Sequence record: NC_020077.1
Strand: one strand, 5' to 3'
Length of the DNA: 64,000 nt
In this document: piece after piece, positions 9,243-58,017 of the stretch
Numbering within the stretch: position 1 is the stretch's first letter
Layout: the number at the start of each line of letters is the position of its first letter
Made by a program: the position numbers and the translations under genes
Notes under the pieces: model-generated
Database searches by the model: none
What the model saw: the letters and a program-made list of their open reading frames with translations, nothing else
What the model was told of the DNA's origin: nothing

Positions 9243-9243
9243 C

Positions 9244-10527: not shown

Positions 10528-10530
10528 GTT

Positions 10531-10680
10531 TTTGGTAAATCTACAAAATTATCATGGCAATTTGGTAATTTTGGTGAAGTCCCTTTTTTCCCTTATGTTT
10601 TTGTGAGTATCGTGTTAAATTAACATGTGATTTTACGTTTTTCACTATTGAGTTCATGATAGAAAGTTTTATAAGCTTAA
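10531..10680 (+). promoter_or_regulatory. Full 48-bp palindrome element (10531-10578) plus early-promoter header
   Basis: TTTGGTAAATCTACAAAA-TTATCATGGCAA-TTTGGTAATTTTGGTGAA; AGAAAGTTTTATAAG at 10661-10675. Confidence 0.85.
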
Positions 10681-10707
10681 ATGAACACAATAATAATTGG
10701 TGGTAAA

Positions 10708-11514: not shown

Positions 11515-11524
11515 GTGACCCATC

Positions 11525-38884: not shown

Positions 38885-39060
38885 ATTTAAAAATACATTA
38901 TACCTTGTCACCCCACAGTTAGGAGGGGGTGTTGAGCCTCAACCTTACGATTCACTGTGGTTACCAACCACTCCACGTGAGGGTCATGGGCCCCCTTCGA
39001 GCCCCAAGGCATGAGGCTCACATCTAATTTTTTAGCTATATTCCACGCTGCTATAACGTC
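38885..39060 (-). ncRNA. Putative omega-RNA overlapping tnpB 3' end, guide in flank
   Basis: GC-rich block nearly identical in DNA between both tnpB copies, while gene bodies differ at synonymous sites; boundaries approximate. Confidence 0.6.
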
Positions 39061-40252
39061 CCTATCATGCGTAAAGCCACACTTCTTGCATTTTAGAACC
39101 CTAGGTTGCCAGCCTCTCCTCTGGGCATTGTTTGTCATAATATTTAGGCTAGAACCACACTTAGGGCATGTCCTAGAGGTATTTTTAGGGTTTACAAATT
39201 CCACTTTTATACCGTATTCTAATGCCTTTTCTGTAATACGTTTCTGTATTCCTCTTATTGCTGATTGTTTAAGTCTATGTGCATCAAATGATTTAAGTCC
39301 ATCTTTCTTAAGCGCCTTATCCTGGAAATTTTTAGGAAGCTTTTCCAATACAAGAGCAGCATTCTCCTTCTTAACTATCTTTGCTACGAAAGAAGCAACC
39401 TTATCTCTCAGTGCTTTTTTAACACTCTTCTCTCTTAACTTTCTTAAAGCAATACGAAGTGATCTCTTATCATGCGCATGTCTTTCCTGGATAGATTTTC
39501 TTCTGTATGCATAGCCTAACACTACCTTACTGTGATTAGTTACGAGTGTGATTGCTTTATGGTCTGGTAGTGTGAAGAGTGTCACATTATTCTCATTCAC
39601 ATCAATGCCAATTACTCTGTTGTAGTTTGTGTTTGGTTCGACGGTTTTACGAAAAAATACATATAACGTCAGCTTTCTGTCTTCGATTTTCCATCTACAA
39701 GAGTCTCTAAGAGTCCAGCCGCCATTGTAGTGTATGTAAAACTGTTTGTGGAAAAGTAATGGTATTCTTATCCATCCCTTGTGGGTAGAGATTTCAACGC
39801 CTTGGAAAGACAGTTTCCAAGACATATTGCCACAGCTGACAGTCCATTGTTTAACTTCTGGTTTTTCAGTGTAAGCAAGGCCTTTCTTTTTCAGCTTTCT
39901 GAAGGATTCCAGTCTAGATGCTGCATCGCGTATTGCCTGTTGAACATATTGTGATGGTAAGTCTGGGTACTTCTCTCTAAAGTACTTGTATAATTCTTTA
40001 ATCCCTCTTAGCCAAGATGTTGTGCCTTTTTGATACATTACATTTACTGCTTCTTTTACCATTTCACCATATACCTTATAAACATAAGAAAGAGCTTCGG
40101 CCTTTTTTGCCGTTAGCCTTAGTGAGACAAGTTCAACCGTTTTTGTAACCTTTTCGCTCATTACGTACCACCAACCCCTCCCTGGAATCACCAGGCATTG
40201 GGGGCTATCATAAGCAGCGAAGTGAAAATTAATAAACTTTACTTTTTATCTC
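38902..40252 (-). mobile_element. IS200/IS605-family solo-tnpB (IS1341-like) element 1
   Basis: tnpB without tnpA; upstream ~55 bp and downstream end GGGTGACAAGGT shared with element 2. Confidence 0.8.
38908..40161 (-). CDS. tnpB: RNA-guided endonuclease TnpB
   Basis: RuvC-I GIDVNE, RuvC-II VLEKL, Zn finger CPKC/CKKC, RuvC-III DRDVIAAWN; MSEKV start at 40161 (ORF extends to 40191). Confidence 0.93.
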   Translation of the reverse strand: MSEKVTKTVELVSLRLTAKKAEALSYVYKVYGEMVKEAVNVMYQKGTTSWLRGIKELYKYFREKYPDLPSQYVQQAIRDAASRLESFRKLKKKGLAYTEKPEVKQWTVSCGNMSWKLSFQGVEISTHKGWIRIPLLFHKQFYIHYNGGWTLRDSCRWKIEDRKLTLYVFFRKTVEPNTNYNRVIGIDVNENNVTLFTLPDHKAITLVTNHSKVVLGYAYRRKSIQERHAHDKRSLRIALRKLREKSVKKALRDKVASFVAKIVKKENAALVLEKLPKNFQDKALKKDGLKSFDAHRLKQSAIRGIQKRITEKALEYGIKVEFVNPKNTSRTCPKCGSSLNIMTNNAQRRGWQPRVLKCKKCGFTHDRDVIAAWNIAKKLDVSLMPWGSKGAHDPHVEWLVTTVNRKVEAQHPLLTVG

Positions 40253-43600: not shown

Positions 43601-45319
43601 TTTGCATTCTTGCCAGAAGTTGTGTCAACTACCTGGAGTCCATCACCTACACCTTATTATCAAGGGAATTTGTTAGTTATAAATACAAGTAATGTTGCAC
43701 ATCTGGAATATATAGGATGGGCTTTTATGCCTTCAACAACAACACTAAATGTCACAATACACGTAGTATCATTCCCAGAGCGTAATAATAACCCAGGCAT
43801 TACAATTTATAGCCCAAATATAGGAAACCAAAGTGATGATAGTAATGGCGGATTTTATGTACTTCTTGTTGATTTTTATGGTGATACAGTATGGTACCAT
43901 GGACCATCTACTGGCTGGCAACCGTTATACGGTTCATTCCCGCAACCTAATCCAAACTATCCGTTTACTTTCACTGTCATCTTTACGGAAAATAGTGCTG
44001 GGAATGTAACAGTGGCAGAAATAGGGATAAACGGTACGTACACGACAGTGAACTATAACACACCATTCCCATGGTCACAAATAGGTTATGTAGCAATACA
44101 TGGGGATCATTCTAATTTATTCTACGTCTCCTATTTCTCAGCATCTAGCGGCCCAACTTCCATCACTTTCGTTTCTCCCTCCTACATCTTCTTAAACAGT
44201 TGGGTATCTTCTTATGTTGTACCTAGCTATCTAAACACGCCCTATGCTTTACCTTACTCTGTATCACAAACTAGCGCTCAAGTTGGCCAATACACCCTTT
44301 CGCAAGGTTTGAACTACGTTTCCTATTCATTTACGCCGGGTTACGTTGCTACTGCTATATTATACTATAACTCTACTCCAGTCCTAGCAAATCTACTATC
44401 ACCCTACATTTCTTACAAGTTCTCTTCACTAACTTTATCATTCTCTACTGCAACAGCTGCAATGTTTTCTAACTTCCCTATTCCAGCTCCTCAGCTACTA
44501 AGTAGTTATATTCCAGCTGGTTCTGTTCTTTATCAAGACCCTATCATATACTACATTTCTCCAACTACAGTTACAATGTATAATACTACGACACTAGCTA
44601 GTTTGCAAAGTTCTAACGCTAGTTCTAGCAGTGCGACTACTACTACTCCACCGCCTTCATCATCTACAAATACTACTACACAATCTATTTCCCCTGGCCA
44701 AATGCAGATAGTGTATAATGGTACAACTGTAATAAGGATAAACCTTGTTACTTTTCCATCAATTACAGTGTCTGAGATTGGCCAAATTATAGCTATGCCT
44801 ATTGTTAACTCATCTGGCGCTTATCTATACCTCTACAACTATAATCAGTCTGCCAATTTCAATGTAACTGTCGCTTATGAATTTAGTAATGGTAGTGTGG
44901 AAACAGTGAATGTTCGTGTTAATTCGATAATTCCAATTCCAGTGCCATATCTGGATTTGCCAGTTAAGGTTAATATAACTGTGTTAAACAAATCTATTAC
45001 TTTTAACATAACGCCAATTCAATTGGGTAGTTCACGATTAGCTCAAAATCTGTACAATGAGATTGCAAATGGCTTGCCTTATCCTTTCAGTCTCTTTGGT
45101 ACTCTTCTTGCTAATCTATTCTTCTCTGTATTTGGCATATCAGCGATATTAAGGAATAATTTGAGATTACTTGGAATAGGCGGAATTGCGTATGGTGCAT
45201 TTATAGCCCCAGGCTTGCTAGACTTAGGCTTCCCGTTGTTTCCTACTGTTATGAGTGCGTTAGTAGCGATTGGTGTAGGTCTTGTTGCAATATGGGCAAG
45301 TACGAGAAGTACTAGTTAA
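40676..45319 (+). CDS. Large membrane-anchored adhesin / receptor-binding candidate with four beta-sandwich-like repeats
   Basis: Signal peptide, four 178-aa repeats, S/T-rich stalk, C-terminal TM helices, many N-glycosylation sequons. Confidence 0.75.
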   Translation: MKSGELIIRLLLLNLLLTSIILVATGIKADSSVSAQPIGQATVYTAPYTSTSFVLNTTVNPINPIASNIRLFKYPNLTGPIQAFVSQGWSSISSGSYPTSRVIKVVPGSGVSGVYPDYLFNGSMFRVGSVVESTAWSPAPKPYYQGNLLVINSTGSTAGQYIGWAFSPSTTTLNVTIHVVSFPERYANPGIDLLSPNVGNQTNDGQAGYYLLLVDLYGSSIYYHGPSVNWQQLYTSLPQPNPSYPFTFSIIYTENSAGNVTVAEIGINGTYTTINVNTPFPWTQIGYVAIREDPNNLIYVSYLAASSGSVFVQFLPTSSIGEAVKYPSLIESTTWSPSPTPYYQGNLLVVNTSNDANLQYIGWAFSPSTTTLNVTIHVVSFPERNNNPGITIYSPNIGNQTTDSNNGFYVLLVDFYGDTVWYHGLSTGWQPLYGSFPQPNPNYPFTFSVIYTENSAGNVTVAEIGINGTYTTVNYNTPFPWSQIGYVAIHGDHTDLFYVSYFAASSGPIFAQFVPPRELQYPPFVESTAWSPAPKPYYQGNLLVINSTGSVAGQYIGWAFSPSTTTLNVTIHVVSFPERYANPGIDLLSPNVGNQTNDGQAGYYLLLVDLYGSSIYYHGPSVNWQQLYTSLPQPNPSYPFTFSIIYTENSAGNVTVAEIGINGTYTTINVNTPFPWTQIGYVAIREDPNNLIYVSYLAASSGQPGTYPVVFVPSYTVNANPFPIFRFPSTITQAYLVYNNNTVFLSSIDAGGQFFLNIPLKMQWEPFTYFGLSAYQLLTVVNAPTTGYLAAFPYPLTYNYFTSPGPFTSVPSTVITPTFSKTTYQLTNVSIQQLTLFTSAGSVTTSTQAYVLPNIGAWTYASVQYPTSVSVIVNNTVQKLSVSGASVTVTASYPTTVIAPDNLIPPPNAQVSVYNATFNKIVISSTSTFTFSTQIVQSGLPTFGLVLPVWYYVSLGTGTIGVPLEQVPMILGNKLFAFLPEVVSTTWSPSPTPYYQGNLLVINTSNVAHLEYIGWAFMPSTTTLNVTIHVVSFPERNNNPGITIYSPNIGNQSDDSNGGFYVLLVDFYGDTVWYHGPSTGWQPLYGSFPQPNPNYPFTFTVIFTENSAGNVTVAEIGINGTYTTVNYNTPFPWSQIGYVAIHGDHSNLFYVSYFSASSGPTSITFVSPSYIFLNSWVSSYVVPSYLNTPYALPYSVSQTSAQVGQYTLSQGLNYVSYSFTPGYVATAILYYNSTPVLANLLSPYISYKFSSLTLSFSTATAAMFSNFPIPAPQLLSSYIPAGSVLYQDPIIYYISPTTVTMYNTTTLASLQSSNASSSSATTTTPPPSSSTNTTTQSISPGQMQIVYNGTTVIRINLVTFPSITVSEIGQIIAMPIVNSSGAYLYLYNYNQSANFNVTVAYEFSNGSVETVNVRVNSIIPIPVPYLDLPVKVNITVLNKSITFNITPIQLGSSRLAQNLYNEIANGLPYPFSLFGTLLANLFFSVFGISAILRNNLRLLGIGGIAYGAFIAPGLLDLGFPLFPTVMSALVAIGVGLVAIWASTRSTS
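41066..44151 (+). repeat. Four 533-bp intragenic repeats in A-B-A-B order
   Basis: A1 41066-41598, B1 41663-42195, A2 42248-42780, B2 43619-44151. Confidence 0.92.
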
Positions 45320-45328
45320 TTTTTTTAT

Positions 45329-45679
45329 TTATTGTGAAGAAGTTTGAGAAGGTTTTTCTATTACCTCCTTGTAAAAAACATTTAACCACTTGTCTACATA
45401 AAGTGCTATAGCTGTTTTTATGATGATGGCTGGCGTAACGTTTCTCCTCTTTGCTAGCTCTTCTATTGCTTCGACCAGATTGCGATCTAATTTCATAACC
45501 TTTATATGCCTTTTTCCTGGCTTAATGTAATACTTGTCGATTGGGTTTTGCAGGTACTCTATCAATGCCTCATTTATTAGCTGTGCCTGATCCTTCTTAA
45601 GAAAGTTTGACACTTTTTGGAGGCTGTCAAATAGGTGATTATCTAAGGGAAATCTAACTTGAACTCTCTGCCCTGCCAT
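45329..45679 (-). CDS. Tandem two-RHH DNA-binding protein
   Basis: RVQVRFPLDNHLFDSL...LINEAL and IKVMKLDRNLVEAI...IIKTAI. Confidence 0.8.
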   Translation of the reverse strand: MAGQRVQVRFPLDNHLFDSLQKVSNFLKKDQAQLINEALIEYLQNPIDKYYIKPGKRHIKVMKLDRNLVEAIEELAKRRNVTPAIIIKTAIALYVDKWLNVFYKEVIEKPSQTSSQ

Positions 45680-45731
45680 ACGTTTTTGCTCTTCATTCTA
45701 GTATTTAAATCTTTCTGACCTAATGAAGATA

Positions 45732-46283
45732 CTACGAATTTACGATACGCGCTAAGTAATCTTCCGCCTCCTTCGTTTGAACATAAGTCAGAATGTGGCG
45801 CAAGCTCTTATGCCCAGTTATTTTTGCAACCACTTCAGCCGGTAATCCATCTTTTATTGCTTTTGTTATAAAAGCATAACGGAAAGAATGCGTATTTACA
45901 CCATAACGCCTTTTACAAAACATCTTAACTGCTGCAATCATTTTCCTTTCACTTTTTGTAAGGATGATGGAATAATACTTTTTGTAAGTGATTATTTTGG
46001 GGATGATGATTTTTCTTTCATTCCCGCCTTTTTCAGCCTTTAAGATGATTGTTCTTTCTTTGCCACCAACCTCTACAAATTGGTAGAAAGCCTTAACTGC
46101 TTCGCCTATTCGTGTACCATTTGTAAGTTGTGTAAGTAAAATTGCAACGTAAATCTCTTTGTCAAAATCTTCAGCGGAGTTTTGCGAGAATTGCTTATAG
46201 TCTTTTTCTAAGGTTTTTCTCATCTTGTCAAAGTCAACTCCCTTGTCCCACTTGAATATTGTCTTCCCTTCTTCTATTGCCAC
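45732..46283 (-). CDS. Minimal tyrosine recombinase (catalytic domain only)
   Basis: GTRIGEA (R), KAEKGG (K), THSFRY (HxxR), TGHKS (H), LTYV (Y); 183 aa. Confidence 0.88.
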   Translation of the reverse strand: MAIEEGKTIFKWDKGVDFDKMRKTLEKDYKQFSQNSAEDFDKEIYVAILLTQLTNGTRIGEAVKAFYQFVEVGGKERTIILKAEKGGNERKIIIPKIITYKKYYSIILTKSERKMIAAVKMFCKRRYGVNTHSFRYAFITKAIKDGLPAEVVAKITGHKSLRHILTYVQTKEAEDYLARIVNS

Positions 46284-46427
46284 ACTTTCATTTTAGATTA
46301 AGCAGTTAAAAATATTCTTTCTGTAAAATTGGAGAAGTAAAGGGAACTAAAAGAGGTCAAAAGTAACGTGTTTATGACGTTGCTGATTATAGAAAGTTTT
46401 AAATATTAGAAAAACAGAACCTAAAAT

Positions 46428-46580
46428 ATGCCATTCAAATGTCCGGTCTGCGGTGAATTCGGAACGCTATATGTTAAAAAAGTAGAAAAAAGAAGATGCC
46501 ATTATTATATAAATCATTATAATAAAAAGCACTGCTACATAGGGCCAGTAAATGATTGTAGTGGTTTTGTAGAGATTTAG
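46428..46580 (+). pseudogene. Truncated duplicate of the zinc-finger gene at 46763
   Basis: MPFKCPVCGEFGTLYVKK...HCYIGPVND then diverges to a stop; own copy of 18-mer (46319) and promoter (46391). Confidence 0.75.
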
Positions 46581-46762
46581 AGAAGCATTCATAACTTATG
46601 TATACATAAGTAAGGTAAATCTTTTTTTTCCAAAATTACCGCTCTTATCTTCTTTCTATAAAATTGTAGAAACAAAGGGCAGTGAAAGACGTAAAAAATG
46701 ACGAGTTCATAACGTTAGTGATTATAGAAAGTTTTAAATACAAGAAAAACAGATCCTAACAT

Positions 46763-47203
46763 ATGTCAACCAAATGCCCAATTTGTGGTGAAAATGGAAC
46801 CCTATACATCAAAAAGTCAGGAAAAAGAAAATATTATTATATAAACCATAATAATAAAAAGCACTGCTACCTAGGGCCGGTAGATGAGTATGTACATGTC
46901 GTAATGAATTATTTAAAAGTTTTTGGCAAACTCCATTTAACAAATGTGAGAGATGCTGATCTAATTGCTGTAATGATGGAGATACTCGATGTACTTGAAG
47001 AGAGATATAAGGGATCAAAAGACTTGAAACTGAAGGCAGATCTAAGGATGATAAGGGACAGGATAGGCAAGATACTAGAGGAAAGCGATACTCAAGCTGG
47101 CCAAGATGAGAAGCAAGAACAAAAAGTAGTGGAAATAATAGAAGGAGATGGCAAAGATGGGAAAGTAGAAAAACCAGTGGAAATAGAGGTACAACATCTT
47201 TAA
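46763..47203 (+). CDS. Zinc-binding (CxxC...H...C) small protein
   Basis: CPICGENG...YYYINH...HCYLGP; early-type promoter AGAAAGTTTTAAATA at 46726-46740. Confidence 0.75.
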   Translation: MSTKCPICGENGTLYIKKSGKRKYYYINHNNKKHCYLGPVDEYVHVVMNYLKVFGKLHLTNVRDADLIAVMMEILDVLEERYKGSKDLKLKADLRMIRDRIGKILEESDTQAGQDEKQEQKVVEIIEGDGKDGKVEKPVEIEVQHL

Positions 47204-47230
47204 ATTATCTTTCTTTTTCTTTTATTTAAT

Positions 47231-47659
47231 ATGTATAATGAAGTTTTGCTTAGATTTGTTGAAGATCTCGGCGATGCGCTTGACATGTACGATATAAGCG
47301 CGCGCAAAATAGCCCCTCACATTGGGCCTTTCGTCTTAAATGAACTGAAAAGAACGATAAGAGAGTACTTGAACACAACTGATATCATAAATTATGTTGA
47401 TTTAAGGCAACTCAACGAGGCAAAAAATGCTAAAGCGCTGCTAATGGCCTTTATACAGGTTTTGGATGTTGGTTTGGCGAAAAGCTATCAATTTGCTGGA
47501 TTTGGCTATCAAACTACACTGGCTAGAACGCAAGCAATAATGACAATAATAAAAAACATCGTGCTTGAAGTTTCAAAAGATTTGGGACTTCCGGAAATTG
47601 AAGAAAAATTGAATGCACTAGAAAAGATACAATTGCAAAGCGGTAATGCTACTTCTTAG
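47231..47659 (+). CDS. Hypothetical helical protein
   Basis: 142-aa ORF. Confidence 0.7.
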   Translation: MYNEVLLRFVEDLGDALDMYDISARKIAPHIGPFVLNELKRTIREYLNTTDIINYVDLRQLNEAKNAKALLMAFIQVLDVGLAKSYQFAGFGYQTTLARTQAIMTIIKNIVLEVSKDLGLPEIEEKLNALEKIQLQSGNATS

Positions 47660-47994
47660 CTTATCCTCTGTATCAATCTCGCGAGCAATACGATAGTGCT
47701 TATGCCCATGAAGACGATATATATTGCGTTAAGCGTATCTGCATAACCTACTGTTACGTAAACTGTTGTATTCGTTGCGGAAGTTGTCATATTAATGCCA
47801 GGCGTTGAAAGGATATATTGATCTGAAGAAAGATACAAAATTGTGGCGTAAATCATACCTAATACTATCAAAACGTCATAGCGAAAACTACCGCTAAAAC
47901 GATAAAGCATAAAGCCAGTGATTGCTATAAAAATGCTGACTATAACAATAAATATTATGTATTGCGTAAGTGTTGGAAGGACTACATAACCCAT
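47656..47994 (-). CDS. Small membrane protein
   Basis: Three hydrophobic segments. Confidence 0.6.
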   Translation of the reverse strand: MGYVVLPTLTQYIIFIVIVSIFIAITGFMLYRFSGSFRYDVLIVLGMIYATILYLSSDQYILSTPGINMTTSATNTTVYVTVGYADTLNAIYIVFMGISTIVLLARLIQRIS

Positions 47995-48033
47995 TTTGGG
48001 TCACTATCAAAGAAAGGAAAAAAATAGATCAGC

Positions 48034-48825: not shown

Positions 48826-50064
48826 CTATCTAACCTTTTTCAACACCACCAGATGCTCGGTTTTGATTCTACTATCTTCTAGCCCAGTGGCCGGATTTAC
48901 ATCTGCTTCGAACATTACGCGAGAAACTATTTTATCAACATAGGTAACTTCATGTTTCCAACCAAACTCTCTTAGGTGCTCAGCAATTATATCATCTATT
49001 TGAATAGGTACATTTCGTATCTTAGCTGGGCCAACAAAGATGAACATGTAATCTGCCACTCTTTCACCTAACGTAGCGAATACCTGCAAAATTGCATTAA
49101 AGTAATTGTCATAAAGTGCCCTAAGATGGTTTTCCTCTATTTTTTCTCTGAGGGTGTAATACGTTTCTGAAAAAATGTTTGTGCTTCTTACTTGTCTATA
49201 AGGAATCTCTCTTTTGCTCAGTGATTGTATGTACTGCTCATCATAGCCCAACCAAAATAGCTCAAGTTTAGTAGACCTAATATACTCTTGTGCTTGCAAG
49301 TAAGGTGGAGACGTGATAAGGACATTAACTTCTTTATCTAGCTTGGTTTCCAACGTGTCAATACCGGCTTTTAACTCATACTCCACTGCTTTTGGATTAA
49401 GATGATTGTACTCTTCTATTTTTGTAATAAGCGTAAGTATCTCATTCTTTAACATGTTATAAAATTTGGCTTTCCAATTTGTTTTAAGAAGTTCTTCTAC
49501 CTTTTGTTTAGAGTACTTTGACTTAAATAGTTTGTGTACTTTTTCATCGCTGTACGAAAAATATCGCGTAACCTTGAGTAACGGTATTAATAGTAAGTAT
49601 TTTGTATCATCTGTCAGTGAGTGTACAAAACCCCATGCATTTGAAAGAAAAGTTAGAAACTCCTCCGGGAACCAATAGTTTAAGTTAGACCACTTGGGGA
49701 GGAATTCCTCTCGTGAGTTCATCAAATCTTTCATTATCTTTTCAACATCTATCTCTGCTCTTGACATGATAGCTGTATTATGAGTCACGTTTATTATTGG
49801 ATTTAATTCCCACAATATATAACTATAGCCATACACTCTTGCCACTACACCAACTGTGCCGTAGCCAGCAAAAGGGTCAAAGACCGTCATGTCTGGCTTA
49901 CAATAAGCCTTTAGCGCGTAGGCAACAACTTGCGGAATGAATTTAGCAGGGTAACGATAGATAGCAAATGTGGCATATGTAGTTGTTGGAATTTCCGGGA
50001 TCATGTTCCTAAAAACTACGGGAACCCTTTGAGACCCTTCAGACGATACCGTCATAATTATCAT
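48826..50064 (-). CDS. DNA amino-methyltransferase, alpha order (probable N4-cytosine)
   Basis: FDPFAGYGT (motif I) before LITSPPY (motif IV); YRYPAKF N-terminus. Confidence 0.85.
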   Translation of the reverse strand: MIIMTVSSEGSQRVPVVFRNMIPEIPTTTYATFAIYRYPAKFIPQVVAYALKAYCKPDMTVFDPFAGYGTVGVVARVYGYSYILWELNPIINVTHNTAIMSRAEIDVEKIMKDLMNSREEFLPKWSNLNYWFPEEFLTFLSNAWGFVHSLTDDTKYLLLIPLLKVTRYFSYSDEKVHKLFKSKYSKQKVEELLKTNWKAKFYNMLKNEILTLITKIEEYNHLNPKAVEYELKAGIDTLETKLDKEVNVLITSPPYLQAQEYIRSTKLELFWLGYDEQYIQSLSKREIPYRQVRSTNIFSETYYTLREKIEENHLRALYDNYFNAILQVFATLGERVADYMFIFVGPAKIRNVPIQIDDIIAEHLREFGWKHEVTYVDKIVSRVMFEADVNPATGLEDSRIKTEHLVVLKKVR

Positions 50065-50076
50065 TTAATGAAATCT

Positions 50077-50460
50077 TTATTGGGATCTTATTACCTTTAT
50101 TACTTTTTCATTTTCATCATAGATAAATTTAGTAATATCTCCAGGCCTTACTCGAAAATGTATTAATAATTTTGCGGGTATCTTCAACCTATAATTTATG
50201 GAAACTATGGCAAAATCTTCAAACTCGAGTTGTAGTGGATTTTCTGCATTCTGTGAATCAACAGGCAACATCCTAGTTGGTGAGACTCTAGTATATGCTT
50301 TAACTAACCTTAGCATTGGTTCATTGCCATTTTTGACAACGCTCACTCTCATAATGTCGCCTAAAGCTATCGGGTAAACCTTCCTTATTGCTATTGGTAT
50401 CGTTACTACGTAATTCGTAGTAACTTTTGAATACGATTCGACTACCATTTTTTCCACCAT
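50077..50460 (-). CDS. Tandem AbrB/SpoVT-domain DNA-binding protein
   Basis: SKVTTNYVVTIPIAIRK...LGDIM and VSINYRLKIPAKLL...RPGDI; early-type promoter at 50493-50507. Confidence 0.75.
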   Translation of the reverse strand: MVEKMVVESYSKVTTNYVVTIPIAIRKVYPIALGDIMRVSVVKNGNEPMLRLVKAYTRVSPTRMLPVDSQNAENPLQLEFEDFAIVSINYRLKIPAKLLIHFRVRPGDITKFIYDENEKVIKVIRSQ

Positions 50461-50546
50461 TCCTTCACATTACGTTTTTTGTAATTTACCAATATATAAA
50501 TCTTTCTATAATAGTGATGAAAACAAACTTCGGAAAAATGAACTAC

Positions 50547-51539
50547 TTAACCAAAAACCTTCCTAAAAACTTCTTCGTGTTCTCTTATCACTCTTTCTAT
50601 CCTGAAATAGTCCGGCAATGTAACTCTAATCTCTTGAGCCTCCTTTATTTTCTCTACTGCTTCTTCATCGCTGCTGTAGAAGAACATCTTCAAATGTTTG
50701 CCAAGTTCTTTATGCACTGGAATATCTGTCACAACCGCTGGGAGGCCATGTGCTGCTGCTTCAGCTAGTGGTAATTCAAACCCCTCTTCTTGTGATGTAC
50801 TAAGATAAACGTCACTCCCAGCATAAAGGAGTGAAAGTTCGGCGTCTGAAATAGTTCCTATGCTTTTATCGCCGTAAATATTTCCTTTCCCTACTGTAAT
50901 GAGATAATAATCATCACCTAGTTTTTCCCTTATTCGCTTCAATCGTGGTAAGTCTTTCCGCGGATGATAGTTTGTAACGTTGAGTATTATCTTTTTATTG
51001 GGCGGGATGCCATACATTTCTCTTACTTTGCGTACTGCCTCTTCACGTGTATAAGCAATGTTAAGGTAATTCCCGTGGTGAATAACCCTAATAGGAGGTA
51101 AATCGAGGCCTTTCTTATCCGCATATTGTTCTAACTCTGATAATGTATGATAAGTTGGAACAATAACGTATGCAGCCTCTGTGAGATGTTTAAGCATGAA
51201 GTACATGTATGGCGTGTAGGTGTAGTGTTTCCATTTTAAGAAAACTAAATCTTGTAGTCCCGTAACTATTGTCTTATGTTTAGCGTGATTCAAGAAATCG
51301 ATGTTTGGAAAAAACACGTTTTGTTCTGGAACAAATTTACAGAAGATGTCGTAGAAAAACGCGTCGATTATAATATTTAGCCTATTTCTGAAAACGTTTA
51401 TTACCTTATCATAACCAGAGGGTGCTTCAGTGTTAACTCGGATAAAATAGAACTTAGAATTAAGGCCAAAGGCAATAACTGCTGCGTATCGACCTAGGCC
51501 AGTGTATGGCGGAGATCGCGTAACAGTAGCGAAATTCAC
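50547..51539 (-). CDS. GT4 (GT-B) glycosyltransferase
   Basis: PRKD, LYAGSDVYLSTSQEEGFELPLAEAAAHGLPAVVTDIP (Ex7E motif). Confidence 0.9.
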   Translation of the reverse strand: MNFATVTRSPPYTGLGRYAAVIAFGLNSKFYFIRVNTEAPSGYDKVINVFRNRLNIIIDAFFYDIFCKFVPEQNVFFPNIDFLNHAKHKTIVTGLQDLVFLKWKHYTYTPYMYFMLKHLTEAAYVIVPTYHTLSELEQYADKKGLDLPPIRVIHHGNYLNIAYTREEAVRKVREMYGIPPNKKIILNVTNYHPRKDLPRLKRIREKLGDDYYLITVGKGNIYGDKSIGTISDAELSLLYAGSDVYLSTSQEEGFELPLAEAAAHGLPAVVTDIPVHKELGKHLKMFFYSSDEEAVEKIKEAQEIRVTLPDYFRIERVIREHEEVFRKVFG

Positions 51540-51578
51540 AAAAAAACTTTTACCTTTACGGAATTATAAAGATTATTG

Positions 51579-53318
51579 TTAAAGTAAACTCTTTAGAGTG
51601 AGAACGCCATTATTCCCTACAACGTTGTAATAGCCAAACGCTTCAACAGTATTATTAGTAACACCAAGAATCTTAGCGTTTATTGCCGTATATATACCAG
51701 GTATTAAGAATAGTTTAGTTGTACCATTTACGCTAAATGATGGTGGCTTAAACAGAACTGGAGGGCCAGTATAGTTGTACTTCATCACAACAAACCAGTA
51801 GTAAACTGCATAAATTCCATACCCATTCTTGTAAAATAGGTTAAGCACCGCAATTGATTGATTATTGAAGTTACTCGTTATGTCAATGACAATGTAATCA
51901 ACACTGACGTTAACTGTAGTGTTAGTAGCAGAATCATAAACCAAATACTGATTTTTAGCAAAATTGAATGATGTGAAGTTTGTGTATTGTAAAACAAGTG
52001 GATATAAATGTTCTGGGACCCTTGGATAGAGCTCGGGCATGTATGGTGTAGTTAAGACAGAAGCGTTTTGAGGTATTAGACTTGCAACCTGGTAGAAGTC
52101 TTGAACACGGTCTGGATACTCTGCCAGCGTGTAATATGGCCCGCCTAATGCTATGCGCGAAGTGATTGAGACTGGGGAAATAAGTGATAGTACAGCAAAT
52201 GTAAGTAGGATAAATACTAATGCGTTTGGCATTATCCTCTTTAAGTTGAAACTATCAATTTTTGCAAGTGTCCTAGCTACAGTAATGAAGAGCTGGGCTA
52301 AGTAAAGTGATGCGTATTGGAATAAGTAAATATATGGGAACGTCATTGATGTATACGTTGTTATTGAAAATATGATAGCCACTGGTAGTATAGTTAGGAT
52401 AAACCAATCCCAAACAAAAAAGGCTGAGCCAAGGATTGTCAAAGGCGTTAAAAGATTCAAAGGCCTAAACCCAATGTTACTATGTCCACTTGAGCTAGCT
52501 AGATGCGATTGTATAAATATGTCAAACGCATTAGGCCCAAAAGCTGCAATTCCTAATGAAGTAAAAGTTATTGCAAAAATAGCAGCGTACATAATGTACT
52601 CAGATGCTTTGTTAAATTCATCTTTTGTTTTAGACTCTTCATGTCTTTTTCCGAAAAGAAGCATTGCGAAATTGCGACTTTTTATGGCTTCTTTAATTTC
52701 GTGTCTTTCTTCAAAAAGTTCTCTAAAAATATCTACAAGACCTTCAACAATAATGTACCATAATACAAGGAATACATAAGGATATCGAACAGTAGAAGCA
52801 AGAATTGCAAAGATCCCTGCTGGTATTGGCTTATTCTTTATCTTAAAGTAATACATTAATAAAAAGTATAGTACAAACAGATTTTGCATGTGGAAAGGCA
52901 TAAAAAGTTCGCCATAAACGCCAGGATTCAAGAGATAAAGCCACACCGTAAAGTATGCCTTATTATAACTTTTTGTTAATTCTTTGGTAATATAGAAGAT
53001 TGGAATTACTGGTGCTGCTGTTACTGCAGCTTGCCAAATCACTGCCTCGTAAGCGTTGTTTATGAAGAAGAAGTAGAGGAGCGGAGATTTATAGGAAAAC
53101 GTACCTAGGATATAGAGCCATGCAAGAGGGTTGTTTAGATGAGCAAGTTGCTGAGCAGTTAAATAAAGAAACATTAGGTTGACTCCAACATCGTAAATTG
53201 GAAAGGCCTCCATTGTTACGTATTGCTGATAGACAAAGGTATAGAATGCGGCAAAAGCTCCAGCGAAAATAAGAAAAACCCCGTATCTCTCTAAGAGATT
53301 TCTATATTTCTTGCCCAT
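51579..53318 (-). CDS. Polytopic membrane protein, DUF2079-like GT-C glycosyltransferase candidate
   Basis: YDVGV after TM1, PFH motif, about 10 TM helices, C-terminal glycosylated domain; MGKKY start at 53318 preferred over 53414. Confidence 0.6.
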   Translation of the reverse strand: MGKKYRNLLERYGVFLIFAGAFAAFYTFVYQQYVTMEAFPIYDVGVNLMFLYLTAQQLAHLNNPLAWLYILGTFSYKSPLLYFFFINNAYEAVIWQAAVTAAPVIPIFYITKELTKSYNKAYFTVWLYLLNPGVYGELFMPFHMQNLFVLYFLLMYYFKIKNKPIPAGIFAILASTVRYPYVFLVLWYIIVEGLVDIFRELFEERHEIKEAIKSRNFAMLLFGKRHEESKTKDEFNKASEYIMYAAIFAITFTSLGIAAFGPNAFDIFIQSHLASSSGHSNIGFRPLNLLTPLTILGSAFFVWDWFILTILPVAIIFSITTYTSMTFPYIYLFQYASLYLAQLFITVARTLAKIDSFNLKRIMPNALVFILLTFAVLSLISPVSITSRIALGGPYYTLAEYPDRVQDFYQVASLIPQNASVLTTPYMPELYPRVPEHLYPLVLQYTNFTSFNFAKNQYLVYDSATNTTVNVSVDYIVIDITSNFNNQSIAVLNLFYKNGYGIYAVYYWFVVMKYNYTGPPVLFKPPSFSVNGTTKLFLIPGIYTAINAKILGVTNNTVEAFGYYNVVGNNGVLTLKSLL

Positions 53319-53360
53319 CAAGTGATAATATATGTCGAGATATTTTAAATTTTTGGACTT

Positions 53361-53408
53361 TTCTCCAAATTGGTAGAATTGTAATGACAATTCTGTAAAT
53401 CTGGTGAA
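53361..53408. repeat. 48-bp tri-palindromic element, full copy
   Basis: TTCTCCAAATTGGTAGAA-TTGTAATGACAA-TTCTGTAAATCTGGTGAA, between divergent TATA boxes. Confidence 0.92.
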
Positions 53409-53448
53409 TTGCATAAATTCTTAAATATTTCTTAGTTGTTGTAATGAT

Positions 53449-53766
53449 ATGGAAGCTGAGATAGTTAAAGGATATAAGGATTTGGTGTTAGAGGCCCTGT
53501 TCTGGGCTTTGAAAAATATGTCTCGTGTAATCAACTATCAGGATGGGTGCCACGAATATTATGATAGAAATAAGGAGTGGTCACTTCAGATTTGTAAAAG
53601 CAGAAAAGAGGAAGTTAATGTCTTCATACACGATGGAAAAGTAATCGTACGTGTTGATGTCTATACATTAACTTACAAGGTTACAGAGATAGCGTTCGAT
53701 TTAATTGAAGATGCGATAGATGCTGTGTGGAGCGGAAAATATGTAACCACGAAAGATTTATCATGA
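53449..53766 (+). CDS. Hypothetical small protein
   Basis: 105-aa ORF with TATA at 53421. Confidence 0.7.
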   Translation: MEAEIVKGYKDLVLEALFWALKNMSRVINYQDGCHEYYDRNKEWSLQICKSRKEEVNVFIHDGKVIVRVDVYTLTYKVTEIAFDLIEDAIDAVWSGKYVTTKDLS

Positions 53767-53799
53767 TACTTATACAATTTTGTAGAAAAACCAGGAGGA

Positions 53800-54795
53800 T
53801 TACTTAATAGCTTTTTCGAGAGCTTGAATTTCTTTTTTACTAAATTTCTCAAACTCTTCCTTTAAGTACTTTATAGCCTTGTGAATTGCCATTATTGGGT
53901 TTTCTACGTTAAATCCAGTTTTGTATATCTTGGTTGAATCAAGCAGTAAGTAGTTTGGCTCAATTGGCCTTGGATTTTCCATCCAGCTTATCTTTCCTTC
54001 CCAGCCTAATTCCTTAGCAACGATAGAAACAGTTTCTGATAACGTCAGAATGTGATTATATACACTATAATGGATTGATACGTTATACACTCCTTCCATC
54101 TTATCTAGATTTTTAATAGCGTGTAGGTAAGCGTTCACGTGGTCCTCCCAGTACATCCATTGCCTGCTTGAGAGAGGATGGCCATCGTAATGTATTTCCC
54201 TAGCACCACTCAACATTGTTAAAACAGTTTTTTCAAAGAAGTATCCTCTTGCCTCTTCCGGCAAACGTGAAATTGGCCTACCAATAGTATTTATAGGCCT
54301 TAAGATAATTGTCTTTTCCTTTCTACCAGCAAGTAGCATCTCTGACGCTATTTTTGAAACTGCATAAGGACTAGTTGGTGTCCTATAAACATCCTCTTCC
54401 TTATAATAGTGAGGATAAGGTGTATAAGGGTAGACTTCGGCGGTTGAAGCGTGAATTAATGGGGCTTCTGCAATTGCTATGTTATATGCTATAATTGCGT
54501 TATTCATGAAAGAAGTGTCCTCATAACTAAGCCTAACAGGCGTTTTTGAGGCCAAGTTAATAACCAAATCAGGCTTTACCTTTCTTAACAAATCCCTTAC
54601 CTTTTCTCTGTCTGTGAGGTCAACGAAAACGTACTCCGCAGCGGAATTAACTGTGTTATGAGAAAAATGATCTTTATTTGAGACACATACTACCTTATCA
54701 TTGTTTAGCTTCTTAAGTAACTGGGAACCGATAAAGCCCGTACAGCCAGTGATTAAAATCATGAGATAGTTAATGTAGTCATTATTTTTAAACAT
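53800..54795 (-). CDS. NAD-dependent nucleotide-sugar epimerase/dehydratase (SDR)
   Basis: ILITGCTGFIG, INLAS, HASTAEVY, SPYAVSK (YxxxK); likely start 54762. Confidence 0.9.
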   Translation of the reverse strand: MFKNNDYINYLMILITGCTGFIGSQLLKKLNNDKVVCVSNKDHFSHNTVNSAAEYVFVDLTDREKVRDLLRKVKPDLVINLASKTPVRLSYEDTSFMNNAIIAYNIAIAEAPLIHASTAEVYPYTPYPHYYKEEDVYRTPTSPYAVSKIASEMLLAGRKEKTIILRPINTIGRPISRLPEEARGYFFEKTVLTMLSGAREIHYDGHPLSSRQWMYWEDHVNAYLHAIKNLDKMEGVYNVSIHYSVYNHILTLSETVSIVAKELGWEGKISWMENPRPIEPNYLLLDSTKIYKTGFNVENPIMAIHKAIKYLKEEFEKFSKKEIQALEKAIK

Positions 54796-54852
54796 TTCTT
54801 TTTGCTTAAATATGAATGGCTAAACAGAATTCTACAAATTTATAGAAGAAAA

Positions 54853-55746
54853 TTATTTTTGCGTGACTGACCTTTGTCCTCTAACTTTTTCCTGAAGCCA
54901 TGTCCTTAGCCATTTTGCGTCTTCTCTTATAATTATCTCGAAATTCGATGAATCCGAATTAAACAGTTTAGCGTGATCTATGCCTAGTTTCTTTTTGACC
55001 ACGTCAAGAAGTTCTAAATCAATTTCATAACCAACTGCTTTTCTTTGTAATTCAATAGCTACCTTTAATGTTGTAGCAGAACCCATAAATGGGTCCAAAA
55101 CAGTTTCGCCAACATAAGAAAATAACTTTATCAGCCTATAGGGAATCTCTTCTGGAAATGCAGCTATTCCTTCTTCAATTCTACCTTTCGCTGGTAAAAC
55201 GTTTGTAATCTCCCATACAGAAAGATACCACTTTTCTCGGTTAAACTCTTGTATATCAATTTTTGATAATTCTAACTCAAGTTTGTTTTTTGGGTATCTG
55301 TATTCACCTTTTTGCATAATCAAAATCTCCTCGTAGATGTTGTCTGGATAGAAATACATCGGATATGGATGCTGTATCTGTACTCCACTTCGTCTACTTA
55401 TCCTAATGTAACCCTCTGGCTTTTTCCAAATAATTCTATCCCGATAATTGAAACCTTCCTCCATCATTATTCTAAGAATGTCCGCAGACACAGGATATAA
55501 TTTCCCATTAATTCTAACATCTTGAGTAATAAAACAAGCTATCCTGCCCGGGGCCAAAACCCTATATAGTTCCCTAGCCACATCCCTTATCAACCCAAGA
55601 AATTCATCATAATCCCTAAATAAACCTGGATAATCAAAGGGAGCATTAAAATAAGGAGGTGAAGTAACCACTAGATGAATTGAACCATCTGGAAGTTCTT
55701 TCATGTTCCTGCTATCGCCGAAAACTATCAGATTTCCTTGAGGCAT
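54853..55746 (-). CDS. DNA amino-methyltransferase, beta order (probable N4-cytosine)
   Basis: VVTSPPY (motif IV) before AAFPEE and VLDPFMGSATT (motif I); MPQGN start. Confidence 0.9.
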   Translation of the reverse strand: MPQGNLIVFGDSRNMKELPDGSIHLVVTSPPYFNAPFDYPGLFRDYDEFLGLIRDVARELYRVLAPGRIACFITQDVRINGKLYPVSADILRIMMEEGFNYRDRIIWKKPEGYIRISRRSGVQIQHPYPMYFYPDNIYEEILIMQKGEYRYPKNKLELELSKIDIQEFNREKWYLSVWEITNVLPAKGRIEEGIAAFPEEIPYRLIKLFSYVGETVLDPFMGSATTLKVAIELQRKAVGYEIDLELLDVVKKKLGIDHAKLFNSDSSNFEIIIREDAKWLRTWLQEKVRGQRSVTQK

Positions 55747-55889
55747 TTTGTAACTATTGTTAATCTTGTGCTTTATATTTATTTTTCGTATACAGTAGAA
55801 GGTCACATCCGTTCTGTAAATTTACAGAAGCTAGAAATAAGCAAGTTAAGACCAAAAAATTTTTAAGTTATAATTATAACCATTATTCA

Positions 55890-56027
55890 ATGATTAATAT
55901 AAATGCCAGCGATCTAGTAGGTCTATATGATGCCATGTATGAAATAGAAAAGCTTAAGGATGACATTATGGAAATATCTGCTAGATTGAAGCAAATGCAG
56001 AATGACCTTGTCACCCGCCTAGGCTAG
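55890..56027 (+). CDS. Small coiled-coil ORF (45 aa), probably interrupted by tnpB element 2
   Basis: MININASDLVGLYDAMYEIEKLKDDIMEISARLKQMQNDLVTRLG; TTTTAAG at 55861. Confidence 0.55.
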   Translation: MININASDLVGLYDAMYEIEKLKDDIMEISARLKQMQNDLVTRLG

Positions 56028-56160
56028 GGTGTTGGGCCTCAACCTTACGGTTCATTGTAGCAACTTGCCACTCCACGTGAGGGTCATGGGCCCCCTTCGA
56101 GCCCCAAGGCACGAGGCTCACATCTAATTTTTTAGCTATATTCCACGCTGCTATAACGTC
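55988..56160 (-). ncRNA. Putative omega-RNA of tnpB element 2
   Basis: Same conserved GC-rich 3' block; boundaries approximate. Confidence 0.6.
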
Positions 56161-57352: not shown

Positions 57353-57449
57353 ACAAGGCTAAGTTGTTCTACCAATTTATAGAAGCTAGAAATTATGCGG
57401 TAAAACAAAAAAGTTTTTAAACTATGTTTATAACAAATCATCATTAGAA

Positions 57450-57932
57450 ATGAATAGTAACGATAGAATAATAAAAACTAAGCAAGGTAACAAATTCCTA
57501 CTTATCATGTTAAATAAAATACTCAAAACTATCAAGGAGAATGGGGAGTACTACAAGGCCAGAGATGTAGGCAAAAACTACGTTTGTTATATGTGGGAAA
57601 CTGCAAGAATATGCGTAGGCCTTGCAAAAAAGTTTGGAAAAGATGAGTATGTTGTTTTCCTAAACTTTAATTCTAATGATATAGGAACTGATGTAATGTT
57701 GTACATTGATACGGAAGAGAGAACAGTGAAGAGACACTCGGTAATTCTAAGCTTTCTACTTAAGAAGATAACTAACGCACCACTCGTGTTGAAGAGCCTA
57801 GATGGCTTGAGAGCGTTTATTGAGGAGTTGATCAGAGCATTGCCAGCTGAGGATGAAAGTGAAGAAGATGAGAAAATGGCTAACTATGAAACACGCCCAA
57901 AGGCAGCAGTAGCAGTTGTTAACTTATCTTGA
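57450..57932 (+). CDS. Hypothetical protein
   Basis: 160-aa ORF flanked by 18-mer palindromes (57367, 57934). Confidence 0.7.
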   Translation: MNSNDRIIKTKQGNKFLLIMLNKILKTIKENGEYYKARDVGKNYVCYMWETARICVGLAKKFGKDEYVVFLNFNSNDIGTDVMLYIDTEERTVKRHSVILSFLLKKITNAPLVLKSLDGLRAFIEELIRALPAEDESEEDEKMANYETRPKAAVAVVNLS

Positions 57933-58017
57933 CTTCTGTAAATTTGTAGAAGTCTGGTTTTTGTTTATATTTGTGTTGAGATAATAAAAGTAAACTGCGT
58001 TTGGTAAATTTGTAGAA
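57931..58017. repeat. Two 18-bp palindrome units
   Basis: GAC-TTCTGTAAATTTGTAGAA-GTC (57931-57954) and TTTGGTAAATTTGTAGAA (58000-58017). Confidence 0.85.

Follow-up and report, generated by a model that had tools for sequence, protein, structure and literature searches.

A catalytic-domain-only tyrosine recombinase of Sulfolobus virus STSV2 and the dyad operator proposed at its promoter

Introduction

The final 64 kb of the genome of Sulfolobus virus STSV2 (record NC_020077.1; the stretch analyzed here, hereafter the window) carry a gene for a tyrosine recombinase that appears to consist of a catalytic domain only, and an enzyme of this build poses the question of how site specificity arises. 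The gene, STSV2_54, is already annotated, with the record labeling it "integrase", and its family is already named: a 2021 review by Badel, Da Cunha and Oberto uses the name STSV/SMV family and, in its available text, reports no detectable Pfam domain (PMC8371274). The same portions of the review make no mention of the catalytic-domain-only build of the family, its breadth, or its gene neighbors. The family is biochemically uncharacterized, as no recombination site, product, or activity was found for any member in the literature searched. The original prediction for this locus held that an RHH protein encoded downstream supplies the enzyme with specificity or directionality, and that the pair acts on 48-bp elements of the genome as a cassette shuffler or genome-dimer resolvase rather than as an integrase.

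Results and Discussion

STSV2_54 (45732–46283, minus strand) encodes 183 aa from a GTG start, and an in-frame TAA stop at 46295–46293 leaves room for at most three further codons upstream. The GTG is supported as the start because the STSV3 homolog has an ATG at the same position and because the family-invariant residues W12, D13, and G15 precede the next ATG (M21). Catalytic residues are in the conserved order (R58, a hairpin Lys at K82 or K85, H132-x-x-R135, H158, and Y167), and the predicted full R-K-HxxR-H-Y set is borne out by an alignment with 14 relatives in which R58, H132, R135, H158, and Y167 are invariant. A family-specific N-terminal motif, WDKGVDF, is likewise invariant in this alignment. 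In profile searches, the protein matches phrog_9208 with an E-value of 2.4e-82 and phrog_5127 with an E-value of only 0.071.

The AF2 model (pLDDT 85, pTM 0.82) aligns over residues 5–183 to residues 126–340 of Cre, 100–280 of XerA, and 170–356 of lambda Int, with Z scores of 10–12.5 (12.5, 11.7, and about 10, respectively). Only the catalytic domains of these enzymes are aligned, in agreement with the predicted lack of a core-binding domain; an N-terminal SAM-like or core-binding domain was not found in the model or in comparisons with the Atlas and with known structures. Foldseek's top matches are all integrase catalytic domains, those in the Atlas are to the catalytic halves of two-domain recombinases (TM 0.65–0.70 by query), and the best sequence match in the PDB is XerA (E = 0.008). 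We are highly confident that STSV2_54 is a tyrosine recombinase and that its architecture is limited to the catalytic domain. No other tyrosine recombinase was detected in the STSV2 genome, and no SSV-type integrase.

STSV2_54 belongs to the STSV/SMV family, whose members, in the available text of the review, share 30% identity or more with STSV/SMV integrases over no less than 60% of the protein (PMC8371274), because it is 42–46% identical over 89–97% of its length to proteins of SMV1–4, ATV, ATV2, ATSV, and YNP1/2. It is a member of the founding type, and its identity to the SMV, ATV, and ATSV proteins extends over more than 90% of length. A homolog is a core gene of every large tailed spindle virus searched, and 157 representative clusters match at an E-value of 1e-30 or better. 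The family numbers 1,546 representatives. Among the 150 best representatives, 143 are no longer than 225 aa, with the match beginning near residue 1, and all 13 close relatives are 165–183 aa. The short catalytic-domain-only form is the norm in the family, which reaches Thermococcales, Methanococcales, and Desulfurococcales and is also carried by autonomous Methanocaldococcus plasmids.

Some members have DNA-binding modules nearby or small extra domains fused to them. A 177-aa HTH gene is linked to the short recombinase in six loci, five of which are Methanococcales records; in Methanococcales the HTH gene is overlapping or divergent. The recombinases of ATV, SMV1, and ATSV bear a 70-aa N-terminal extension with a predicted fold of three short helices and one long helix (pLDDT > 90), which we would guess to be HTH-like, and other family members carry small fused domains. 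No separate STSV2 gene resembles the 70-aa extension (tblastn against the whole genome; best E = 0.14). The predicted separate supply of a DNA-binding module is therefore in keeping with the linked HTH genes and fused domains of relatives, but the RHH protein fares poorly as that module, as detailed below.

Structurally, the catalytic domain is matched best by XerA/XerC/XerD and Cre (Z scores of 11.7–12.5), which resolve dimers of circular replicons, the role we favor for STSV2_54. All of them differ in possessing a core-binding domain at the N-terminus and a defined site of 28–34 bp. When the genome was scanned for 11-bp inverted arms separated by 5–9 bp, a search that misses shorter or asymmetric sites, 11 such sites appeared, none of them near STSV2_54. 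The protein also falls outside XerA proper because it scores 25.8 bits against NCBIfam model NF040815 (residues 54–172 only; cutoff of 220) and because it has no N-terminal SAM-like domain. The integrase of SSV1, like STSV2_54 a viral enzyme of Sulfolobales, has the same catalytic fold (PDB 3VCF, 3UXU, and 4DKS; Z scores of 8–9). But it has a 173-aa N-terminal domain and an attP inside its gene, and STSV2_54 has neither; SSV-type integrases are of phrog_5127, whereas STSV2_54 is of phrog_9208. These differences uphold the prediction that the enzyme is not SSV1-type and that its gene holds no att or tRNA fragment. The only in-gene match to two Sulfolobales metagenome-assembled genomes (MAGs) is a chance match of 20 nt (E = 0.17) outside any tRNA.

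Two other systems resemble this one in part. FimB and FimE of enterobacteria are tyrosine recombinases of about 200 aa with little beyond the catalytic domain; they use accessory DNA-bending proteins and invert a promoter segment between short inverted repeats. Unlike the Fim system, STSV1 and STSV2 show no inversion. The integrase of the archaeal virus SNJ2 reportedly requires two small proteins encoded in the same gene cluster, as shown experimentally. It is said to be a full-length enzyme of another family, with accessory proteins that are neither of the RHH nor of the HTH type seen near STSV/SMV enzymes. Whereas the SNJ2 partnership is thus reportedly experimental, a partner for STSV2_54 is a proposal.

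Location and recurrence of the 18-bp dyad upstream of STSV2_54 bear on whether it is a target of the enzyme. The 18-mer (46319–46336, unstranded; consensus TTCTGYAAATTTRCAGAA; 20.7 bits) is, as predicted, 35 bp from the start of STSV2_54 at 46283, and it is 92 bp from a divergent ORF. It has arms of 6–7 bp and a center of 4–6 bp, and it adjoins the TATA/BRE region of the recombinase gene, where a putative TATA-like box (46305–46311, minus strand; 22–28 nt upstream of the start codon) corresponds to a TATA_box annotated in STSV1 at 59891–59897. In STSV1 and STSV3, the 18-mer is kept 36 bp upstream of the recombinase gene. Each STSV genome has about 30 copies: 29 sites of at least 16 bits in STSV2 versus 0.27 in shuffles, although the matrix was built from the 48-bp elements and 14 of these sites trained it, and 24 in STSV1 versus 0.2. 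Despite noncoding DNA making up only 12.6% of the genome, 26 of 30 sites are intergenic, and their distances to start codons cluster at 36–42, 66–72, 92, and 130–133 bp. A weaker copy is inside the recombinase ORF (46071–46088, unstranded; codons about 66–71; 14.0 bits), 248 bp from the promoter copy; its counterparts score 19.0 bits in STSV1 (59657) and 14.0 bits in STSV3.

Among the viruses and contigs scored, enrichment of the 18-mer is confined to STSV1 and STSV2. Four carriers of the recombinase (ATV, SMV1, an ATSV segment, and a Thermofilum contig) lack the sites. The expected co-occurrence of recombinase and element is contradicted by these four, and together with the recurrent promoter distances and the collinearity of STSV1 and STSV2, they argue against the 48-bp elements and their 18-mers being the substrate of the enzyme. 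We consider it probable that the 18-mer is a promoter operator and not a recombination site. The copy before STSV2_54 is more likely a general promoter signal of STSV2 than a private target of the enzyme. A 2024 study of a shared early promoter lists, in its available text, the STSV2 anti-defense genes STSV2_03, _04, and _06, all of the left arm (PMC11065993). The 18-mer looks like a different signal from the one in that text because the left arm of STSV2 has a single copy.

The 18-mer is also part of a module that serves a gene on the opposite strand. Positions 46312–46525 (plus strand; 214 nt; repeat family D18) comprise the 18-mer, a promoter, and the 5' part of a Zn-ribbon gene, and are 75% identical to a tandem copy at 46647–46860; the module is single-copy in STSV1 and STSV3. 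The first copy leads into an unannotated but transcribed ORF of 50 aa (46428–46580, plus strand) that encodes a truncated Zn-ribbon paralog of STSV2_55 (phrog_33343, E = 2.7e-16). The second contains another 18-mer (46654–46671, unstranded; 16.9 bits), 92 bp upstream of STSV2_55 itself (46763–47203, plus strand), whose product joins a Zn ribbon to a helical tail and also matches phrog_33343. Homologs of STSV2_55 are divergent from the recombinase in STSV1 and STSV3; in Desulfurococcaceae locus L029 a homolog is directly downstream of it, and in two further loci (L011 and L012) one is no more than 10 kb from a short recombinase.

RNA-seq contigs cover the STSV2_54 ORF in all four runs, and the promoter gap at 46313–46426 has no contig coverage in three of the four. 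Contig ends joined to adapter fall at 45680 and 46427, each 1 nt before a start codon (the ATG of STSV2_53 and the start codon of the ORF at 46428), and contigs of the truncated paralog start at 46427–46451; being contigs, these data are no proof of the ends, strand, or level of transcripts. STSV2_54 and STSV2_53 are on separate RNA contigs.

STSV2_53 (45329–45679, minus strand), the predicted two-RHH gene, does follow the recombinase in the same orientation, across a gap of 52 bp. Its product is a single chain of 116 aa with two RHH units, matching phrog_3180 (Arc-like) at residues 4–43, phrog_3887 at 60–96, phrog_7325 (CopG-like) at 8–97, and phrog_33101. However, its predicted place as a dedicated partner is not supported. 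The gap holds a TATA-like box (45702–45711, minus strand), equivalent to a TATA_box annotated in STSV1 at 59290–59295, and STSV2_53 is one of at least nine RHH-repeat paralogs in STSV2, including STSV2_17 to _23 and _25. Its homologs occur only in STSV1–4 and in a Metallosphaera STSV-like contig of the same gene order, and 44 further loci have none next to the recombinase. STSV2_53 is more likely a separately promoted transcription regulator than a dedicated recombinase subunit, and possibly reads operators of the 18-mer type.

The STSV1 and STSV2 genomes are collinear: nothing has been inverted or transposed between 18-mer sites. Three structural differences between them are flanked by direct copies of the 18-mer: the STSV2_63 cassette, a 1.5-kb IS-bearing segment that splits a 48-bp element, and a 335-bp duplication at the STSV2_54 promoter. 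A catalytic domain guided by the RHH protein and recombining the 18-mer/48-bp dyads, so as to move promoter-linked cassettes or resolve dimers, would also explain these differences. Such a partnership would be in line with the tight linkage of a DNA-binding gene to the recombinase elsewhere in the family and with the RHH-recombinase-Zn-ribbon trio preserved in the relative from Metallosphaera, where the recombinase shares 82% identity with STSV2_54. The minimal core site of lambda also has dimensions not far from those of an 18-bp dyad with 6–7-bp arms. Yet some 30 near-palindromic sites have yielded no inversion, and closeness of indel ends to the motif is, by a rough estimate, not beyond chance for intergenic breakpoints (p of about 0.06). 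Homology-driven recombination between dispersed repeats of 18–48 bp explains the flanked indels equally well. With the motif missing from four recombinase carriers and fixed in its promoter distances, and with an RHH gene that is separately promoted and has eight or more paralogs, we regard RHH-guided recombination at these dyads as very unlikely.

The annotated alternative is that STSV2_54 is a viral integrase that inserts the circular genome into, and excises it from, a site in the host chromosome while its gene stays intact. It would be classical or pNOB8-like rather than SSV-type, and accessory proteins of the host or the virus would stand in for the N-terminal domain that it lacks. The annotation may be correct because a review table, in its available part, lists STSV1/2 under "Integrates: yes" (PMC4390879). 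ATV is reported, in the available text of two sources, to lysogenize by integration (PMC12662068, PMC8371274). The STSV2_54 homolog is its only integrase candidate, with no other recombinase annotated in 54.5 kb of the ATV record (all but positions 50001–58195). Being the only tyrosine recombinase found in STSV2 also speaks for this role, as do several chromosomal homologs at 0.3–1.5 kb from tRNA genes.

Searches for attachment sites point the other way. A perfect 44-bp repeat, corresponding to the 3' half of a tRNA-Gly gene, marks both ends of a Thermococcus element of 27.5 kb, and an SSV-type integrase is split at this repeat, with an intact short recombinase directly upstream of the Int(N) stub. 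Integration of this element is therefore accounted for by the SSV-type enzyme, split at its att site, and not by the short one. In the Methanothermococcus chromosome, the tRNA-Ser adjoining the recombinase gene has no detectable att repeat, and none was found within the 10-kb flanks of STSV2_54 homologs. Likewise, no tRNA-like attP was found in 36 kb of the STSV2 record (positions 40001–76107) compared with the two Sulfolobales MAGs, which are incomplete and not from the host. The recombinase is also a core gene of viruses that are described as chronic or lytic. In Desulfurococcales locus L025, a second SSV-type-like integrase adjoins a tRNA-Arg and the short recombinase is also present; the two kinds of enzyme are together in two to four loci only. 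This coexistence in relatives speaks for the predicted role outside integration. We place integration second, as a close if somewhat unlikely rival to maintenance of the viral circle.

Another possibility is that the protein no longer works as a site-specific recombinase, acting either as a sequence-independent, topoisomerase IB-like nicking-closing enzyme or as a helper for another recombinase, for which the Thermococcus arrangement would speak. As a helper, it might for example lend its own undamaged catalytic domain where an element's SSV-type integrase gene is split on integration. Type IB topoisomerases match the fold of STSV2_54 with a Z score of about 9, and neither the AF2 model nor structure comparison reveals a recognizable DNA-targeting domain. 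These scores are below those of the recombinases, however, and invariance of the catalytic residues and of WDKGVDF is as expected of a conserved specific enzyme. STSV2 also has no SSV-type integrase to assist. Either version of a nonspecific enzyme appears improbable to us.

Conclusions

The explanation we favor overall, albeit tentatively, is that STSV2_54, a minimal recombinase, serves to maintain the circular viral genome, with the 18-mer as an operator and the RHH gene independent of the enzyme. The intact and expressed protein would carry out conservative site-specific recombination on circular viral DNA and rely on other proteins that bind or bend DNA to locate its recombination site. 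It may thereby keep the genome as monomeric circles, through resolution of multimers or maintenance as an episome, and this role, itself held with considerable reservation, is preferred over integration of the tRNA type. The copy of the STSV-specific dyad against the recombinase TATA/BRE region would place the gene in a virus-wide regulon, with STSV2_53 as a possible reader of the 18-mer.

A broader and rather improbable reading is that family members are split recombinases, bare catalytic domains that work with an interchangeable DNA-targeting module. The module would be fused N-terminally in ATV, SMV, and ATSV and C-terminally in some metagenomic members, and in Methanococcales it would be the overlapping or divergent HTH gene. 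In Thermococcus it would perhaps be borrowed from the Int(N) stub of the partitioned SSV-type integrase. STSV would draw it from the RHH or Zn-ribbon neighbor, with 18-mer dyads as targets and promoter-linked cassettes as the mobile units.

Apart from the enzyme, a dyad operator of about 30 copies would define a regulon in STSV-like viruses, of which we found no description in the literature searched, and the 18-mer is a concrete candidate for the binding site of their unusually large set of RHH proteins. Members of the STSV/SMV family are common among the viruses, plasmids, and integrated elements of archaeal hyperthermophiles, and their occurrence alongside self-destroying SSV-type integrases hints that archaeal mobile elements divide labor between the two. 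With DNA-binding modules that are fused, neighboring, or absent, the family offers natural variants for testing how a catalytic-domain-only recombinase acquires specificity.

Structure and family of STSV2_54

Sulfolobus virus STSV2 encodes a single tyrosine recombinase, STSV2_54 (45732-46283, minus strand), whose annotation reads "integrase" and "similar to STSV1 ORF56 and ATV gp72". Positions 44000-48000 match the STSV2 record (NC_020077; 76,107 bp) at 99.9% identity, and adding 12,107 converts window to record numbering. Its ORF starts at a GTG and encodes 183 aa, and an in-frame stop three codons upstream excludes a longer N-terminus. This start is credible because STSV3 has an ATG at the same position and because the invariant residues W12, D13, and G15 precede the next ATG (M21). 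The 163-aa annotation of STSV1 ORF56 (locus L002, 4705-5196) begins at that internal ATG, loses the family-invariant W-D-x-G motif, and is probably too short; tblastn aligned the full 183 aa to this region with 97.8% identity.

The protein has the catalytic residues R58, beta-hairpin lysines, H132-x-x-R135, H158, and Y167. Residues 5-183 of an AlphaFold model (pLDDT 85; pTM 0.82) align to Cre 126-340, XerA 100-280, and lambda Int 170-356 (Z 10-12.5), and Foldseek matches of the model are integrase catalytic domains. Relative to recombinases with an N-terminal SAM-like domain in the ESM Atlas, TM scores are 0.65-0.70 by query versus 0.34-0.45 by target. Going by the structural alignments and this asymmetry, STSV2_54 is the catalytic domain alone. 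The original observation of a catalytic-domain-only recombinase with a full residue set is thus confirmed.

STSV2_54 is already known, being annotated and in a named family whose biochemistry is uncharacterised. A 2021 review (PMC8371274) counts the "STSV/SMV family" as one of 17 archaeal tyrosine recombinase families and says of it only that it has no detected Pfam domain. When 1.84 billion representatives were searched with a profile, 1,546 matched at E ≤ 0.001, including 157 at E ≤ 1e-30. The short build is the norm: 143 of the 150 best representatives are at most 225 aa, and the 13 near relatives span 165-183 aa and open with a conserved W-D-K/R-G motif at residues 2-14. The gene is in all large tailed spindle viruses of the phage collection (STSV1-4, ATV, ATV2, ATSV, SMV1-4, and YNP1/2). 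The recombinases of ATV, SMV1, and ATSV (241-242 aa) have a conserved N-terminal extension of ∼70 aa, for which modeling gives, at high confidence, a small helical domain and a linker, and no counterpart of it is encoded anywhere in the STSV2 genome. Some metagenomic members have other N- or C-terminal additions. Among species genomes, the family occurs in Thermococcus, Methanocaldococcus plasmids, Methanothermococcus chromosomes, Desulfurococcales, Pyrobaculum, Thermofilum, and others.

Besides a 169-aa homologue, a Thermofilum MAG contig (L008; 23.9 kb) encodes a MoxR-type AAA ATPase and a VWA protein, two genes that together are a hallmark of large tailed spindle viruses, and it is probably a virus of this type infecting Thermofilaceae. 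A PAPS-reductase-like gene adjoins the short recombinase upstream in ATSV (L005 2960-3742) and downstream in Methanothermococcus (L030 10643-11557; L038 3956-4870).

The 18-mer as a putative operator

As originally noted, an 18-mer dyad (46319-46336) lies 35 bp from the STSV2_54 start codon and a gene with two RHH units follows downstream. The 18-mer is immediately upstream of a TATA-like box, at a place matching an annotated TATA box in STSV1. It is similar to each half of the 48-bp elements, in which two 18-bp dyads (consensus TTCTGYAAATTTRCAGAA) flank a 12-bp palindromic center. A matrix trained on 14 half-sites found 29 sites of at least 16 bits in STSV2 (14 of them training sites) versus 0.27 in shuffles, and 24 in STSV1 versus 0.2, at gene-order positions matching those of STSV2. 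No sites of this score were found in SMV1, 54.5 kb of ATV, an 8.5-kb ATSV segment, or the Thermofilum viral contig.

Sites are concentrated between genes, with 26 of the 30 STSV2 sites of at least 14 bits in noncoding DNA, which is 12.6% of the genome. The spacing between an STSV2 site and the nearest start codon falls repeatedly into the same classes (36-42, 66-72, 92, 106-110, and 130-133 bp), the first class including the 18-mers before STSV2_54, STSV2_35, STSV2_63, and STSV2_72. The copy before the recombinase gene is retained in STSV1 and STSV3, where it is 36 bp upstream. It is also the first element of a 214-nt module with a tandem duplication only in STSV2, and this module drives the divergent Zn-ribbon gene, STSV2_55. 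The 18-mer thus looks like the operator of a virus-specific transcription factor.

An STSV2-specific 335-bp tandem duplication (46312-46981) comprises the 18-mer, promoter, and first ∼44 codons of the Zn-ribbon gene, and gives rise to a 50-aa ORF (46428-46580) missing from the annotation; from 46427 on, this ORF is covered by RNA-seq contigs. Within the recombinase ORF is another dyad copy (46071-46088; STSV1 record 59657-59674; STSV3 locus L061 2389-2406), 248-249 bp from the promoter copy and scoring 19 bits in STSV1 and 14 bits in each of STSV2 and STSV3, which could serve looping or autoregulation or else be due to chance.

Recombination at the 18-mer and 48-bp elements

STSV2_54 was originally proposed to act, guided by the RHH protein, on the 48-bp elements, and some rearrangements would fit such action. 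A 354-bp STSV2_63 cassette has direct 18-mer copies at both ends, the 335-bp duplication starts at an 18-mer, and a 1.5-kb segment with a transposase-like gene, bounded by a 27-bp direct repeat containing the 18-mer, interrupts a 48-bp element that is intact in STSV1. However, recombination between dispersed short repeats explains such repeat-flanked differences equally well, and by a rough estimate chance could place intergenic breakpoints as near to motif copies as the indel ends are. STSV1 and STSV2 are ∼86% identical and collinear throughout, with zero inversions despite ∼30 near-palindromic sites in each. Moreover, the sites are tied to promoter geometry, and the recombinase family is far wider in distribution than the motif, being kept without sites of at least 16 bits in SMV1, ATV (54.5 kb), the ATSV segment, and the Thermofilum contig. 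Action on these elements is therefore not supported.

STSV2_63 (53361-53793; record 65468-65900) is absent from STSV1 and inserted between two direct 18-mers. The start given for STSV2_62 in the annotation (record 65521) overlaps a 48-bp element and probably lies too far upstream. Two transposase/TnpB-type elements, 85% identical (38902-40247 and 56005-57346; record 51009-52354 and 68112-69453), both terminate 20-30 bp away from an 18-mer. Of these, the second is inside the 1.5-kb insertion, and the 48-bp element split there is intact in STSV1 at 68665-68712, which suggests that palindromic elements are attractors of this IS family.

The RHH gene and candidate DNA-binding partners

The two-RHH gene STSV2_53 (45329-45679, minus strand; "hypothetical protein") is separated from STSV2_54 by 52 bp that include a TATA-like box. 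In contigs from four RNA-seq runs of one 2015 study, a break falls between the two genes in three of the four runs, and the promoter gap (46313-46426) likewise lacks coverage in three of the four. Two contigs stop 1 nt short of a start codon: one, with adapter letters at its end, at 45680 before the STSV2_53 ATG, and the other at 46427 before that of the divergent 50-aa ORF. The pattern shows RNA signal and not DNA carry-over, and fits leaderless transcripts from separate promoters, though contigs cannot prove transcript ends. Homologues of STSV2_53 are limited to STSV1-4 and a Metallosphaera contig of the same gene order. This restriction and the separate promoter pattern give no support to the RHH protein as the recombinase's partner.

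Kin of STSV2_53 include the 106-aa two-RHH proteins STSV2_17 and STSV2_22 and the multi-RHH proteins STSV2_18-21, STSV2_23, and STSV2_25. STSV2_17 and STSV2_22 head two runs of multi-RHH genes (3950-12508), each with one 18-mer copy 130-131 bp upstream (3803 and 8774), a layout typical of autoregulated repressors.

Other DNA-binding genes are linked to the recombinase in relatives. In two Methanocaldococcus plasmids, the short recombinase gene overlaps a gene whose 177-aa product has an HTH of the resolvase/invertase type. At two Methanothermococcus loci a homologue of this HTH gene is upstream and divergent, at a third it is no more than 1.1 kb away, and at one further locus it is a longer ORF downstream (gene and homologues: L020 10534-11067, L042 10537-11070, L031 9174-9707, L034 9139-9669, L030 8346-8882, and L037 2992-4263). 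The arrangement thus varies between overlapping downstream and divergent upstream, and linkage that persists through rearrangement usually marks a functional pair. A Desulfurococcaceae locus encodes a Zn-ribbon protein of the STSV2_55 family immediately downstream of the recombinase, and two further loci have one no more than 10 kb away. HTH linkage and Zn-ribbon neighbors support the general part of the two-component idea, that a catalytic module may work with DNA-binding modules, whether fused to it or encoded separately; the specific pairing with the RHH protein lacks such support.

Integration or genome maintenance

STSV2_54 is the sole tyrosine recombinase of STSV2, ATV is reported to integrate (PMC12662068; PMC8371274), and STSV1/2 are entered as integrating in a review table (PMC4390879). 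Yet comparison of 36 kb around the gene with two incomplete Sulfolobales MAGs revealed no tRNA-like attP, family members occur alongside true integrases in other elements and on autonomous plasmids, and all these circular-genome spindle viruses have the recombinase as a core gene. On these grounds we favor, tentatively, a role in genome maintenance, in which STSV2_54 would, for example, resolve multimers, over integration, which is only slightly less likely.

One case of coexistence is in a Thermococcus MAG, where a 27.5-kb element (L058/L059, contig positions 26805-54396; L022 9980-10834) lies between perfect 44-bp repeats of the 3' half of tRNA-Gly(CCC). An ORF that begins at the distal repeat encodes the C-terminal portion of an SSV-type integrase (phrog_5127, E 4e-66, profile positions 121-354 of 355), and an Int(N) stub overlaps the tRNA. 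An intact short recombinase is 55 bp upstream of the stub in the same orientation. Since the SSV-type enzyme explains integration, the short recombinase there must have another role. Speculatively, "suicidal" elements might be excised by means of an intact catalytic domain encoded beside the broken integrase. In a Desulfurococcales locus, too, a second, SSV-type-like integrase adjoins tRNA-Arg.

The points worth carrying forward are the minimal build as the family norm; the 18-mer regulon of STSV-like viruses, of which we found no published description; and the links of the short-recombinase family to SSV-type integrases and HTH genes in other archaea.
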